Positions 50,658 through 64,000 of a DNA stretch of 64,000 bases are shown one piece after another (the first letter of the stretch is position 1; every line of letters starts with the position of its first letter). The stretch comes from Blastocladiella emersonii ATCC 22665 (taxonomy: Eukaryota; Fungi; Blastocladiomycota): assembly GCA_025594325.1 (NCBI GenBank), contig JANHCV010000004.1:1736001-1800000 (forward strand), read 5' to 3'. The position numbers and the translations under genes were made by a program. The notes below the pieces were generated by a model, which worked only from the letters and a program-made list of their open reading frames with translations, was not told the origin of the DNA and made no database searches.

Positions 50658-50951
50658 GAATAGACTCTCAGTTTTGGTGAAACGACACACACTGACATGA
50701 GCGACGCGGTCGTGGTCGCACGATGGAGAAGTGTCCCGACTCGGTGCAGCCGCGGACGTGCGGCTGGCCGTGATCACTTCTCTTCGGAATTCGTTGCTGA
50801 ATAGTTGCGGAATGATCGCCCACTCAACGCGATTCGGAAGGGCAGGAGGCGTCACGATGATCGAGCGAAGGCAGGAGCGGCGAAAACCGTCTTCGCCGCA
50901 GCAGCGAACGCTCGCTCCCCCCGATGTTCATGGATTATTGATCGTAAACGA

Positions 50952-51917
50952 ATGTATTTCTGGAGCGGATCCCACAAACACAACGCCAACCGCTCCGTCA
51001 ACGGACCCGACCTGCTCGCGCGGCAGGTCAGCGACGTGCTGAACGTCTACGTCGAGATGGCTGTCGCGGCGGGCGAGCCCACGCCTGTCCTCGATCGTAA
51101 TCTCATCGCGCAGGTCATTACGTGCTGCTGCTCGCCGGCTGCGGCCCACGCCCCGGCGGGTGCCCCTCCGCACCACCTGCCCGAGCGCGTGTGCGCCGCG
51201 TACCGGACGTACGCCCAGCTGTGCGCCAGCGACGGCGTCCAGGAACTCGTTCCTCCTGCGCTCGAGGTGAGCCTGACAGATCTGGACTCGTTGGCGCAGT
51301 CCTACGAGCGGGACATTCTCGCGTTTGGTTGGAGGATGGGCGACAAGTACGCGACGACGTTCGGCAAGACGCTTGTCAGCGAGGAGATTGTTGCCGAGGA
51401 GGAAACCCGGCTCAAGAACCACCTGCTCGTCGAGTGGTTCTATCGCAGCCCGATGACGGCCGAGGCGGCGGCCCACTCGACCGACCCGCTCGCTGACGCG
51501 CTCGCTGCGGTCCAGACCAAGGAGAGACCCGGCCAATTCATCCGCTCGCTCCGCCGCAGGGCAAACAAGGCGCTGCAGGACCCCACGGCCGTGAACCCGC
51601 TGCCGGCCGTCCTGCCGCCCGAGCTCCGCGTGCCGCCTGCAGAGCGCTATGACCGTATCGCCGCAACCCGGACACGGATCTGTGCGGAGGCGGGGATCAA
51701 CGTGCGAGGACTGGACTGGATGGAGCGGGTCGTGCGGCTTCGCCGGCTCCGCGACGACTACGTCCGCCGCGCGCTCGCTCCCCCTACGTTGCCGTTGGTG
51801 CGCCTGGTTCCGGAGCTCCCGCTCGCCGAGGCCGCGCTCGAGACGCCGACCAAGTCGCGTGCCAAGTCGAAGAAGAAGAAGTCTTACATCGGCAGCAAGC
51901 AACAGGGTAACCGCTGA
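50952..51917 (+). CDS. Hypothetical protein
   Basis: Long single frame with protein-like composition, Lys-rich C-terminus; start uncertain. Confidence 0.55.
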   Translation: MYFWSGSHKHNANRSVNGPDLLARQVSDVLNVYVEMAVAAGEPTPVLDRNLIAQVITCCCSPAAAHAPAGAPPHHLPERVCAAYRTYAQLCASDGVQELVPPALEVSLTDLDSLAQSYERDILAFGWRMGDKYATTFGKTLVSEEIVAEEETRLKNHLLVEWFYRSPMTAEAAAHSTDPLADALAAVQTKERPGQFIRSLRRRANKALQDPTAVNPLPAVLPPELRVPPAERYDRIAATRTRICAEAGINVRGLDWMERVVRLRRLRDDYVRRALAPPTLPLVRLVPELPLAEAALETPTKSRAKSKKKKSYIGSKQQGNR

Positions 51918-60830: not shown

Positions 60831-61495
60831 CTAGCACGTCCCGTTCTCGAGCGAGCACGCGATCCCGGCCTCGACGGCGCCCTTGGCGTCTGCCGCCTCC
60901 GTCTTGGTCCCGGCGCTGGCCGCAATCCGCTCGGCGCGGATCCGCTCGAACACGCTGAGCCAGGCCGCGGGATCCTCGGCGCCGTGGATGCGGAACTTGC
61001 CGCCGGCGACGTCAAAGTCGGGGACGCCGCCGATCCCGGAGCGGCGCGACTTGTCGAGGGTGACGCGGGTCTCGTACCCGAGCTCGCCCAACGCGAGGAA
61101 CTCGAGGGTCTCGTCGCGGCTGAGCCCGGCCTTCTCGGCGCCGTTGGCGAGCACGGCGTGGTCCGACAGCGGGCGGCCCTTTTCAAAGTACTCGACGAAC
61201 AGGGCCTCGACGACCTTGGTCTGGACCCCCGCGCCGTGCGTGGCGAGGACGTGGGTCAGGAGCCGGTGGTAGTCAAAGGTGCTGCCGATCAGGCCCGTGT
61301 TGTCAAACTGGATGCCAACGCTCGCGCCGATGGCGTCCATCTGCGCCCACATGCGCCGGTACCCGGGCCCGAACCGCGCCTCGTACATCTCGGTCTTGGG
61401 TCGCGCCTCGGCCGTCAGCGTCGGGTTCAGGTCGAACGGGTGCCACCGCGTCTCGACGGCGAGCGCTGGCTCGTCCGGGTGCGCCGCGTTGTATC
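60831..61495 (-). CDS. DsbA-like thioredoxin (FrnE type) lacking its 5' CxxC exon in this window
   Basis: RWHPFDLNP..GSTFDYHRLL..LFVEYFE..GIGGVPDF..IHGAEDP; in-frame TGA at about 61504; no CPWC seen upstream. Confidence 0.8.
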
Positions 61496-61496
61496 T

Positions 61497-61600
61497 GGGC
61501 TGTCACTTTCGACATGGCCGCATTACAAGACATGTGAGGGTTCCGTCGGACACACACCCCGAGAGGTGCACCCCAAGACAGTTCCCCCAGGTAGGACGAG
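61497..61600 (-). ncRNA. Candidate Fanzor omegaRNA scaffold at element right end
   Basis: Hairpin-rich stretch downstream of the Fanzor stop, ending in the GGC-CA-TGTC-GAAAGT-GACA-GCC hairpin (61519-61498) just before host DsbA coding sequence; expected position for TnpB/Fanzor RNAs. Confidence 0.5.
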
Positions 61601-61698
61601 TGAGGAGAGAGAGGAAGAAACAAACAACAGCGGGGAAGGAAGGAAGGGAGGGAGGGAGGACCGGACCACGGACACTACCATACGCCAGCCCGCCCGCC

Positions 61699-63360
61699 CT
61701 AGTTGTCGGCCTTGCCGCCCTTGCCGCGACCGCGACGACCGCGATGACCGCGCGCGCGAGCGTGCTCGTACACGCGCGCCTCGGGCGACTCGCGCGCGGC
61801 TGCGTCCACGTCCATGGCGGTCGCCTGCTCGTTGTTGTTGCTTCTGCTGCTGCTGCTGCTGGCCGTGGTGGTCGTGGCACCCCGTGCGGGCACCATCGCC
61901 GCCATGACCGCGCGCGAGACCTGGTCCTTGGTGTACTGCTGCACCGCAGCCCGCCGAGGCGCCGAGCCGAGCCCCGCGGCCCGCCCCGCCGCCGTAATCG
62001 TCATCGTCGTCGCAGCCGAAAAAGTCGGGCGACCCGACGTCGCAGCGCGAGGCTGGACAGTCGAGGCCGACGAGGGCTGCACGTTGACGAGGTCGGGCAA
62101 CAAGGACCCAGGGGACCCAGGGGACGCGACGCGACGGCGCATGCGGGACGCGGAAGCGGGCGCGGAGCGAGACAAGGAAGACGCACTTGGCGATCTCGAT
62201 CGGCTTCTTGACGCCGAGCTTGAGGATGACGAGCTGCTTGGCGAGGAGGACCGACTGCGGGCTTGGCTGTTGGCGTCGTCTTGATCCAGGTCCATGTTGT
62301 TGAGGCCGTGGTCGTTGCCATCCTCATCACCTCCTGCACCCGGACCACCATCACCACCATCACCACCACCACCTGGACCGTCGGCGGGCTCGTCCGCGTA
62401 GCCGGGGTCGCCCTCGAACCGCAGCAGGTTGCTCGCGTACAGCGCAATGTTGAGCGCGGCGTTGCGGTCGCAGTTGAGGGCGTGGCAGCACCGCCGGCAC
62501 ACCTTCTTGGCCCACGTCTTGCCGGGCTGGTGCGGGTCCGTGCCGAGGTCGCACGAGCCGTTCTTGCCGTTGTCGGGAGCGACCGCCGCGCACGCGCAGC
62601 ACCGCTTCGACGTGTAGGCCTCGTTGACAATGTGGATGTTGACCTTGCGCTTGCGCATCTCGCGGATGAACTCCTTGACGGGGCCCTTGGACTTGGCCTT
62701 GATGTGGCCGAACTCGTTGGCGTGGCCGATGAGCACGACCGCGTCGCGCAGCATGTTGGCGATGTTGGACCACCACTGCTGCCGCCACGACAGCTGGTTG
62801 AAGTGGCGGCGCTTGTGGGCGAGGCGGTTCTGGGTCGTGTACACGGGCTCAAAGTACTTGGTGTTGGTCTGCGTCATGGCGATCTTGTCCTTGGACTTGG
62901 CCGCCTTGGACATCTTGGCGTACACGGGGTCGAGGTTCTTCTCGGCGCGGACGCGCTCCTCGTCGGCCTTGGCCTGGGTGCCGCCCGTCTGGCCCTGGAA
63001 CCGCCGCGTCGAGATCTGCAGGTAGCGGTACTCGCCGAGGCCCTTGGGGTGCGTGATCACCTTGAGCACCTCCTCCTTGAAGGCGAGCTTGTTGGCCTCG
63101 GACAGCGGCGCCGGGCCGTCGCCGTGCGTCGCTTGTCGTCGGTGGACGAGCGAGCGCGCGAACACAAACTCGAGGATGATGAGCGAAATGAAGTTGTTGA
63201 CGCCCGGGTCGATGCCGACCAGGTACTTGCCGCGCGCGACGCGGATGGGCTCGTTCTTGATCCCGAACTCCTTGACGGCCTTGCGCACGTTGAAGCCCAT
63301 GAAGTCGCCCGACCCGCCGCCCGCCTCGTCGCCCGCGTCGCCCTCCTCCTCCTCCACCAC
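61699..63360 (-). CDS. Fanzor (eukaryotic TnpB-like RNA-guided RuvC nuclease); N-terminal REC/WED part not evident
   Basis: LVGIDPG (D 63210-63208), VVLIG..GPVKEF..IVNEAYTSKRCCAC (E 62622-62620), VCRRC..CDRNAALNI (D 62469-62467). Confidence 0.92.
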   Translation of the reverse strand: MVEEEEGDAGDEAGGGSGDFMGFNVRKAVKEFGIKNEPIRVARGKYLVGIDPGVNNFISLIILEFVFARSLVHRRQATHGDGPAPLSEANKLAFKEEVLKVITHPKGLGEYRYLQISTRRFQGQTGGTQAKADEERVRAEKNLDPVYAKMSKAAKSKDKIAMTQTNTKYFEPVYTTQNRLAHKRRHFNQLSWRQQWWSNIANMLRDAVVLIGHANEFGHIKAKSKGPVKEFIREMRKRKVNIHIVNEAYTSKRCCACAAVAPDNGKNGSCDLGTDPHQPGKTWAKKVCRRCCHALNCDRNAALNIALYASNLLRFEGDPGYADEPADGPGGGGDGGDGGPGAGGDEDGNDHGLNNMDLDQDDANSQARSRSSSPSSSSSSSSASRSRSRSPSASSLSRSAPASASRMRRRVASPGSPGSLLPDLVNVQPSSASTVQPRAATSGRPTFSAATTMTITAAGRAAGLGSAPRRAAVQQYTKDQVSRAVMAAMVPARGATTTTASSSSSRSNNNEQATAMDVDAAARESPEARVYEHARARGHRGRRGRGKGGKADN

Positions 63361-64000
63361 GCTCGTCAAGCAGTGGGGTGCCGTAAAGGCCCGCAGCGTC
63401 GCGTTCCGCGGGATCGACAAGCACAAGATCCAAAAACTGCTGACCGACTCGGCGCTCGTGCGCGACGAGCTCAAGACCAGCCAGTTCCGGCTCGAGGCCG
63501 TCTCCTACTCGATCCGCACCGCCATGCAGGGCCCGACGTCCCTGGCCGCGGGACCCGTGACCAGCAGCATGGGCGCGGGTGGGCCGGTGCTCATGGCGGC
63601 GTACCACGAGATCTTCGCCCGCGCCGAGGCGGCGCGCGCCGAGGAGGTCGCCGCGCAGACGTTTGTCGACGTGGATGAGCTGGTACCCACGCCGGGTCCA
63701 CCTGCTGCTCCTGCCGCCGTCGCCCCCGGCCCGATCCCCGCCGTACCCGAGGACTTTTTGTATGGCAGCGTCTTCTCGAAGAACGCGGCCGTTCGGGCTC
63801 GGACTCGGCCTCGGTCAACGACCGCAGCAGCCGAGTACCTCGACCATCACCCCGCTGACGAGGATGACGGCGATGGAGCTGCTGCCGCCGCTGTTGCTGC
63901 TGTTGCAGCTGCTGTAGCTGCTGCTGCTGCTGCGGCGGCGGCGAGCGCTCAACCTGCTGCAACGGGTGCCGCTTCCGCGGGTGGTGGTCGCGGCCGTCAA
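63299..64000 (+). CDS. Unidentified plus-strand ORF head-to-head with Fanzor; runs off window
   Basis: No stop from 63026 to 64000; protein-like from about 63361 (LVKQWGAVKARSVAFRGIDKHKIQKLLTDSALVRDELK..), Ala-rich end. Confidence 0.5.
   Translation, partial: MKSPDPPPASSPASPSSSSTTLVKQWGAVKARSVAFRGIDKHKIQKLLTDSALVRDELKTSQFRLEAVSYSIRTAMQGPTSLAAGPVTSSMGAGGPVLMAAYHEIFARAEAARAEEVAAQTFVDVDELVPTPGPPAAPAAVAPGPIPAVPEDFLYGSVFSKNAAVRARTRPRSTTAAAEYLDHHPADEDDGDGAAAAAVAAVAAAVAAAAAAAAASAQPAATGAASAGGGRGRQ

Follow-up and report, generated by a model that had tools for sequence, protein, structure and literature searches.

A probably non-functional, 5'-truncated young copy of a Fanzor1 mobile element in the genome of Blastocladiella emersonii

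The described protein that is closest to the sequence considered here is SpuFz1 from Spizellomyces punctatus (8GKH and 9CEU-9CEZ in the PDB). The sequence itself is an open reading frame (ORF) on the minus strand of a 64,000-nucleotide stretch of DNA, hereafter "the window", from Blastocladiella emersonii ATCC 22665 (assembly GCA_025594325.1, contig JANHCV010000004.1); SpuFz1 is the best match of its core in comparisons of both profiles and folds. The two proteins share the order of elements, namely RuvC-I, a helical insert, RuvC-II, the TNB zinc ribbon and RuvC-III, as well as a RuvC-II Glu residue that has been relocated to an N/D-E-x-x-T-S motif. However, unlike SpuFz1, the window copy is devoid of all that lies N-terminal of the linker that precedes RuvC-I, i.e. 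the WED and REC domains, and ends with a low-complexity tail of 230 residues, while full-length Blastocladiella paralogues can be aligned over almost the whole SpuFz1 chain. We propose that the region is probably a young, 5'-truncated and non-functional copy of a Fanzor1 mobile element, whose full-length source ("the master") resides on the same contig.

The kinship with the prokaryotic proteins is more remote. The window copy shares the RuvC/TNB core fold with bacterial TnpB (ISDra2) and Cas12f (Foldseek E ~1e-4), but the profile match to TnpB and Cas12f (E ~1e-8) is limited to the TNB/RuvC-III part and is much more distant than that to Fanzor1. Most TnpBs, including ISDra2, possess the canonical RuvC-II Glu, in place of which the window copy has Gly. 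TnpBs belong to the prokaryotic IS200/IS605 elements with TnpA, unlike the window copy, which is eukaryotic.

Two kinds of described Fanzor1 elements offer themselves for comparison with the mobile units of Blastocladiella. The SPu-1 element has terminal inverted repeats (TIRs) of 33 bp as well as TA target-site duplications (PMC3627910), whereas the Blastocladiella units show neither TIRs nor target-site duplications. The Fanzor1 Helitron2 elements carry Fanzor1 as their only gene, have no TIRs, and their full-length insertions are made without target-site duplication (PMC3627910); those of Chlamydomonas are frequently truncated at the 5' end with the 3' end intact, which has been attributed to copying from the 3' end (Bao and Jurka, PMC3627910). 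The Blastocladiella elements behave similarly: they are Fanzor1-only units without TIRs, and there are 5'-truncated copies with intact, identical 3' termini, one in the window and one in locus L002. On the other hand, their termini (TTAGTC...GATACA) are not of the CTRR type, in which a hairpin stands ahead of CTRR at the 3' end and both ends have hairpins, and the 5' flanks of two full copies of the type represented by gene model P0003 (..TATCAT and ..GGGCCC) differ from each other and from the TTTT target of Helitron2. Thus, neither the termini nor the target fit a Helitron.

Identity of the Fanzor1-derived core

The ORF occupies positions 61699-63474 of the window and comprises 591 codons counted from a TTG; its first ATG lies at 63300 and is followed by 534 open codons. 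In the NCBI annotation it corresponds to a hypothetical protein of 470 residues (P0001), which starts at the same ATG and contains two short introns in the Ser-rich tail that look like artefacts. The translation contains, in the TnpB order, GIDPG (RuvC-I), VNEAYTSKRC, the zinc-ribbon motifs CCAC and CRRC (CxxC..CxxC, between RuvC-II and RuvC-III) and DRNAALNI; the segment KRRHFNQLSWRQQWW is also present. With residues numbered from the ATG, the putative catalytic residues are Asp31, Glu227 and Asp278, and the zinc ligands are Cys234, Cys237, Cys268 and Cys271. The main features of the core, all on the minus strand, are as follows:

62392-63300, minus strand: RuvC and TNB zinc-ribbon core, residues 1-303 from the ATG (PF07282, SpuFz1 profile, AlphaFold model, Foldseek, G+C content at third codon positions 0.97)
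63208-63210, minus strand: codon of the RuvC-I Asp31 (GIDPG), a nearly invariant column that aligns with the IDP motif of SpuFz1
62620-62622, minus strand: codon of the relocated RuvC-II Glu227 (VNEAYTSKRC), a nearly invariant column that aligns with LDEYKTS of SpuFz1
62488-62601, minus strand: TNB zinc ribbon CCAC...CRRC (PF07282; cysteines invariant or nearly so)
62467-62472, minus strand: Cys277-Asp278, with the RuvC-III Asp kept and a near-invariant Arg replaced by Cys (CGC to TGC), from the family alignment and comparison with the master

In the Pfam database, residues 273-343 of the ORF match the Cas12f1-like TNB family PF07282 with E 3.5e-7, which is over the gathering cut-off, and the NCBIfam model of TnpB matches the C-terminal part only (E 1.4e-5). 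A profile of the core family recognizes SpuFz1 (8gkh) with E 4.4e-43, followed by PpFz1 from Parasitella (1e-29) and GtFz1 from Guillardia (2e-20), with Fanzor2 (3e-8) and Cas12f/TnpB (~1e-8) as more distant matches. The profile of full-length members reaches SpuFz1 with E 3.6e-50 and covers residues 426-1027 of the fusion chain, i.e. nearly the whole length of SpuFz1. Only the family profiles reached SpuFz1; direct phmmer searches of PDB sequences with the core and with the full-length paralogue P0006 returned no match. The AlphaFold (AF2) model of P0001 residues 1-310 is confident (predicted local distance difference test score, pLDDT, 88.6; predicted template modelling score, pTM, 0.85) and superposes on SpuFz1; four states of SpuFz1 occupy ranks 1-4 of the Foldseek search against the PDB, with 9cey/8gkh on top.

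In an alignment of 36 family sequences, D31, E227, C234, C237, C268, C271 and D278 all fall into invariant or nearly invariant columns. The canonical position of the RuvC-II acid is taken by Gly192 (VVLIGH), 35 residues upstream of Glu227 (VNEAY), and both of these columns are nearly invariant; a rearranged RuvC-II catalytic site, with an inert Gly or Pro in place of the canonical Glu and a compensating Glu some 35-45 residues further downstream, has been described for Fanzors (PMC10530073). The assignment to Fanzor1 is solid because the Pfam TNB match, the SpuFz1 profile and Foldseek matches and the rearranged RuvC-II all agree: as judged from its sequence, the ORF is derived from Fanzor1 and has retained the catalytic residues. 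A sequence-only reading of this DNA had already noticed Fanzor-type motifs in the TnpB order and all three catalytic acids; PF07282, the SpuFz1 profile and Foldseek uphold the former, and the family alignment confirms the latter and adds the four zinc ligands. The check by profile and structure prediction that was suggested there places the core closest to SpuFz1, ahead of TnpB, Cas12 or Fanzor2.

The master gene and the limits of the copy

A search for homologues with the 1055-residue P0003 as a query revealed the master, an ORF of 896 uninterrupted codons (L005 15420-18107) that is part of gene model P0106 and lies on the same contig at a distance of ~450 kb. Residues 799-1109 of P0106 and the window ORF share 96% identity. 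At the nucleotide level (blastn), window 61490-63368 corresponds to L005 16442-18320 with 97.3% identity over 1883 bp and with sharp ends, and there is no other similarity between the window and L005. The master encodes REC/WED motifs, a longer acidic linker, then the MGFNV... segment, the RuvC/TNB core and the low-complexity tail, and is followed by a 210-bp 3' end terminating in GATACA. It has ~340 additional codons upstream of the breakpoint of the copy, which bear the REC/WED motifs that align with SpuFz1. Since the frame of the master runs through the linker into MGFNV..., the ATG at 63300 from which the copy is annotated corresponds to an internal Met in the master. The copied unit can be divided as follows:

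61490-63368, minus strand: whole copied unit, consisting of acidic linker, RuvC/TNB core, tail, stop and 209-bp 3' end (blastn 97.3%; about double unitig depth)
63301-63368, minus strand: remaining part of the acidic linker, upstream of the ATG, with the 5' breakpoint in the GAG repeat 63355-63368 (codon likelihood, read graph)
61699-62391, minus strand: native C-terminal tail, Gly/Asp- and Ser-rich low complexity followed by a basic end (same tail in the master ORF)
61490-61698, minus strand: 3' untranslated right end with GATACA at 61495-61490, where an omega-RNA scaffold would be expected (97-98% identical to the flank of the master)

The missing N-terminal half was sought by several means. 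On the full-length profile of 626 positions the master covers 175-598, and the window ORF only 356-616. A hidden Markov model (HMM) built from the N-terminal halves of the paralogues found no match in the six-frame translations of the window, and neither WED nor REC, the N-terminal domains expected of a Fanzor1, where they hold the omega-RNA and the guide-target duplex, is present in the copy. Its 5' junction lies inside the acidic linker, in a GAG repeat that provides microhomology. The codon-usage log-likelihood favours the minus strand in 63301-63360 (the acidic run) and the plus strand beyond, with a switch at ~63361. RuvC-I is preceded by ~52 residues of Fanzor origin, of which 30 follow the ATG and ~22 are codons of the acidic linker, which reaches 63368.

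The same breakpoint is seen in DNA unitigs from the assembly's own sample, which we mapped onto the region. The unitig 63249-63355 has a depth of 281 and forks at 63355. One branch is the reference path (138); the other (139) stays in the Fanzor frame with an extended Asp/Glu run and matches the sequence of the master. The left host flank is a single unbranched 32-kb unitig of depth 156 that ends at 61550, and the depth is about double over 61521-63355. The equal depths after the split, together with the single-copy flanking unitig, therefore indicate two paralogous loci rather than two alleles.

At the other end, similarity between copy and master stops at the same base, after GATACA, 209-210 bp past the stop codon, with 4 substitutions and 1 indel in the 209-bp 3' end of the copy. 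All five element ends that were read in the clade, including those of the P0003-type units and their truncated copy, stop at GATACA and continue into unrelated flanks. Neither inverted terminal repeats nor other repeats bounding the copy were found, and no target-site duplications were seen; at the 5' junction of the copy, where a truncated Helitron2-type copy would have a variable duplication, the host sequence is itself truncated. The minimum-energy folds of the 3' region close a hairpin on the terminal GATACA, which is not significant; in predicted stability the region does not surpass shuffled sequence (z +1.0). Rfam contains no match to this region and returned only sub-threshold matches on the CAG-type repeat at 63865-63966. 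An origin as a retrocopy was rejected, as the 3' junction lacks a poly(A), and so was homing by way of homologous repair from the flank on the guide side, as the flanks differ immediately after GATACA.

The tail that follows RuvC-III comprises ~230 residues rich in Gly/Asp and Ser. The G+C content at third codon positions (GC3) falls to 0.6-0.7 in the tail and recovers to 0.9. The tail is regarded as native to the lineage because the master carries it in one continuous ORF and because P0003 shows the same GC3 profile; the tails of P0001 and P0003 are not significantly similar by BLASTP (E 0.1).

The sequence-only reading's estimate of about 50 residues before RuvC-I and its long low-complexity tail both hold, but the tail is not the sign of rearrangement that it was taken for, being present in the master and showing the same GC3 dip in P0003. 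Of its two alternatives, "a rearranged copy" is right, in that the ORF is a 97.3% identical, 5'-truncated duplicate of the 3' part of the L005 gene, and "an unusually compact variant" is wrong, the REC/WED half having been lost. The paralogue with a full N-terminus that it asked for exists, as the master has kept the REC/WED head. Of the limits proposed there, 61699-63360, the right one lies within 8 bp of the true breakpoint at 63355-63368, whereas the left one has to be moved to 61490, since the unit extends 209 bp beyond the stop. Finally, the label of an RNA-guided nuclease is unsupported: the half that binds the guide RNA and the target is absent and, to judge from the sequence, the protein, if made, could therefore not act in this manner.

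The last 1.88 kb of the master unit was copied into the window locus with the exact 3' terminus kept. The copying may have begun at the 3' end of the element and stopped early, in the rolling-circle-like manner that Bao and Jurka proposed for the 5'-truncated Helitron2 elements, the copy starting at the microhomology of the GAG repeat; alternatively, a full insertion may have been shortened later by a deletion. On the simplest reading, each neighbouring gene would have lost its head, and both a shared divergent promoter region, in this event or in the later deletion. The open frame, the D-E-D triad and the host-like codons (GC3 0.97) would then reflect the youth of the copy (~2% divergence) rather than its function.

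Several observations concern the master locus and the assembly as such. Gene model P0106 (1233 residues, 8.1 kb; L005 10001-18110) appears to be chimeric: its first ~310 residues derive from a degenerate P0006-like Fanzor copy in which the RuvC-II E has become Q (L005 9993-11035 shares 70% identity with L004), and the remainder is the master. A 97-bp inverted repeat (L005 13655-13751 and 15395-15489) is found at the 5' edge of the master. At position 63025 of the window, contigs of two runs (X2 and X3) read C at full depth, as in the master, while the assembly has G, possibly a consensus error.

Divergence since the duplication and rival explanations

Within the 303-codon core, copy and master differ by 10 replacements and 9 silent changes. 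With P0003 as an outgroup for polarisation, the derived changes of the window copy are D70N, E132K, R162H, R172W, D221N and R277C; all six affect conserved residues, and none of its polarisable changes is silent. On the side of the master, one replacement (G206A) and silent changes in codons 24, 26 and 32 are derived. Fisher's test gives p 0.033, or 0.005 when codon preference helps to polarise the silent changes as well. The R277C change eliminates the near-invariant Arg beside the RuvC-III Asp (NRDRNAA in the master, NCDRNAA in the window), and the W of KRRHFNQLSWRQQWW, the segment that the sequence-only reading likened to a bridge helix, is another of the copy-specific changes. The counts are small but coherent and point to purifying selection on the master and to drift in the copy. 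All six replacements of the copy, which span window 62472-63093, are CpG to TpG/CpA transitions, and so are at least four of the probably derived silent changes of the master. This pattern would fit mutation of repeated DNA linked to cytosine methylation, with a sample too small to say. The dN/dS ratio of ~0.97 between P0001 and P0003 (NG86) was set aside, as codon bias suppresses dS and the value averages over the history before the truncation.

A number of facts weigh against decay of the copy. The ORF stays fully open for the 534 codons that start with the ATG, no catalytic or zinc-binding residue has been lost, GC3 in the core (0.97) equals that of the host genes, the terminal branch of the copy (0.59) is not longer than the stem of the sister lineage (0.50), and the polarised counts (6, 0, 1 and 3) are small. 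The first four of these do not distinguish a maintained gene from a very young pseudogene; they are expected even without function, because the copy has diverged from the master by only ~2-3%. On a rival view, the truncated gene would be expressed, its RuvC/TNB-only product having been kept for a new role, as a dominant-negative partner of full-length Fanzor1, a guide-independent nuclease or a DNA binder. In addition to the open frame, the D-E-D triad, the four Cys residues and the host-like GC3, such a view could draw on the confidently predicted stand-alone fold, on the basic C-terminal end, which has been kept, and on the fact that NCBI annotates a gene. However, at such low divergence intactness and codon bias are to be expected in the absence of selection, and the copy's own lineage shows six replacements of conserved residues with zero silent changes, including the loss of Arg beside a catalytic Asp. 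Moreover, no promoter space is evident, as the coding signal of the opposite strand starts no more than ~60 bp from the ATG, and no orthologue or short-form relative of the copy was found in a library of 1.84 billion proteins. We therefore consider a retained protein quite improbable. A solo guide gene is also unlikely. In this case the protein would be dead, but the right end would still yield an omega-RNA, with a guide taken from the DsbA-like sequence that abuts the element, which the 96%-identical protein of the master would load in trans. In TnpB/Fanzor systems, the flank immediately beyond the right end supplies the guide (PMC10530073), the 209-bp 3' end of the copy has been kept up to the exact GATACA with the few changes mentioned above, and the master, as the would-be supplier of the protein, appears to be under purifying selection. 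The absence of any excess stability in the predicted 3' fold and the lack of a matching Rfam family speak against it. If it were true, truncated copies would widen the target range of the element family.

The other two alternatives question the truncation itself. The window carries a second, unrelated Fanzor1 piece, so that one piece is head-only and the other tail-only: window 51282-51860 on the plus strand, within ORF 50805-51917, is an N-terminal-only fragment of a P0006/P0009-like lineage, annotated as a hypothetical protein of 321 residues, in which the homology ends after "..VPEL" and GC3 is 0.86. Its existence (tblastn E 1.7e-8 and 2e-7), position and orientation would be compatible with a single gene split by an 11.5-kb inversion that broke inside it, the fragment being the N-terminal half of the ORF discussed here. 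Nevertheless, the fragment falls into the P0006/P0009 clade, sharing blocks of 38-62% identity with P0006, while the core is a member of the P0003/P0106 clade with 32% identity to P0006; the sequence that truly continues the core upstream, as seen in the master and the read graph, bears no relation to the fragment, which does not match the N-terminus of the master; and the WED strands are absent from both pieces. The split gene was thus rejected on clade membership and on the known sequence of the master, and we find it scarcely credible. That the truncation is an artefact of assembly, with a full-length gene at the real locus, is suggested by the branching of the read graph at 63355 into a path that continues as a full-length gene. 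However, this path is explained by the master locus in the same assembly, the two paths are equal in depth, and contigs X2 (62817-63874), X3 (63326-63874) and X4 (62933-63697) cross the junction in the reference configuration. These contigs represent two runs plus a third, error-prone contig resembling a long read, and as all runs come from the assembly's own sample they testify to consistency rather than providing independent proof. An artefact is extremely improbable, and a young, truncated and non-functional copy is by far the reading that we prefer.

The Blastocladiella family and the flanking host genes

The search of 1.84 billion representative proteins with the HMM returned 83 matches, the strongest of which are nearly all from B. 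emersonii. This species has a lineage-specific Fanzor1 family with at least 15 annotated genes. In the full-length paralogues (~570-640 residues or more), 270-350 residues with the motifs L.RL..LRD.Y, W-D..L and N.F.G...TDGY..R...GG..P precede the core, and residues 8-298 of P0001 correspond to the C-terminal 280 residues. In the tree, the 13 B. emersonii paralogues that were included group together against metagenomic relatives (SH-aLRT 92), with P0001 as a sister to P0003/P0002. B. emersonii has thus a private radiation of Fanzor1 genes; a literature search found no paper that pairs "Fanzor" with "Blastocladiella". The NCBI gene models of this family are unreliable, as exemplified by the chimeric P0106 and the invented introns of P0001 and P0002.

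The P0003-type unit has a length of 3505 bp and is present in two full copies of 96.2% identity, situated between housekeeping genes (L003 9919-13423 and L006 5919-9353). The full copies start with TTAGTCTACTCTCG, copies of this type end with AAATGATACA, and neither TIRs nor target-site duplications were seen. These copies suggest recent mobility. P0002 (L002 9960-11654) is a 5'-truncated duplicate of P0003, 92.7% identical and with the exact 3' end kept, and serves as an internal control, being a second 5'-truncated copy from an element type other than that of the window copy. It contains a frameshift and a D to Y change at RuvC-I, and its branch is ~30 times longer than that of its parent. 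In contrast to P0002, which has already lost the frame and the RuvC-I Asp, the window copy still has an open frame.

Both host genes that flank the window copy look cut:

60831-61489, minus strand: DsbA-like gene without the N-terminal CxxC end, abutting the element terminus (matches only positions 29-184 of the 191 in the Pfam DSBA profile)
63369-64000, plus strand: divergent low-complexity gene (annotated start 63524), with a coding-like signal without its own ATG in 63369-63523 (annotation, codon likelihood)

The open frame of the DsbA-like gene (60831-61502, minus strand) begins no more than 12 bp from the GATACA terminus of the copy, and the upstream exons added in the annotated 223-residue model fall inside the Fanzor 3' end. 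On the other side, the divergent gene is annotated to start 224 bp from the ATG of the copy, but the plus-strand codon log-likelihood is +24 for 63362-63523, and GC3 is 0.95 in 63369-63523. This signal has no in-frame ATG until 63299, which is inside the Fanzor-derived sequence. The gene, which encodes 894 residues of low complexity, may have lost its original start. No homologues of its N-terminus were found by local BLAST or by a word-based search, the latter being saturated by low-complexity words.

With respect to the question of whether Blastocladiella has a naturally miniaturised Fanzor, our answer is negative, which spares the cloning of a protein without the guide-binding half. The full-length genes of the P0003, P0105 and P0106 type are better candidates for active, high-GC, mesophilic Fanzor1 nucleases, because the master shows the signature of purifying selection. 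Recent mobility is suggested by at least two element types whose copies share 96-97% identity with one another, and the exact GATACA terminus is predicted to mark the point where the omega-RNAs of the Blastocladiella Fanzor1 family should end.

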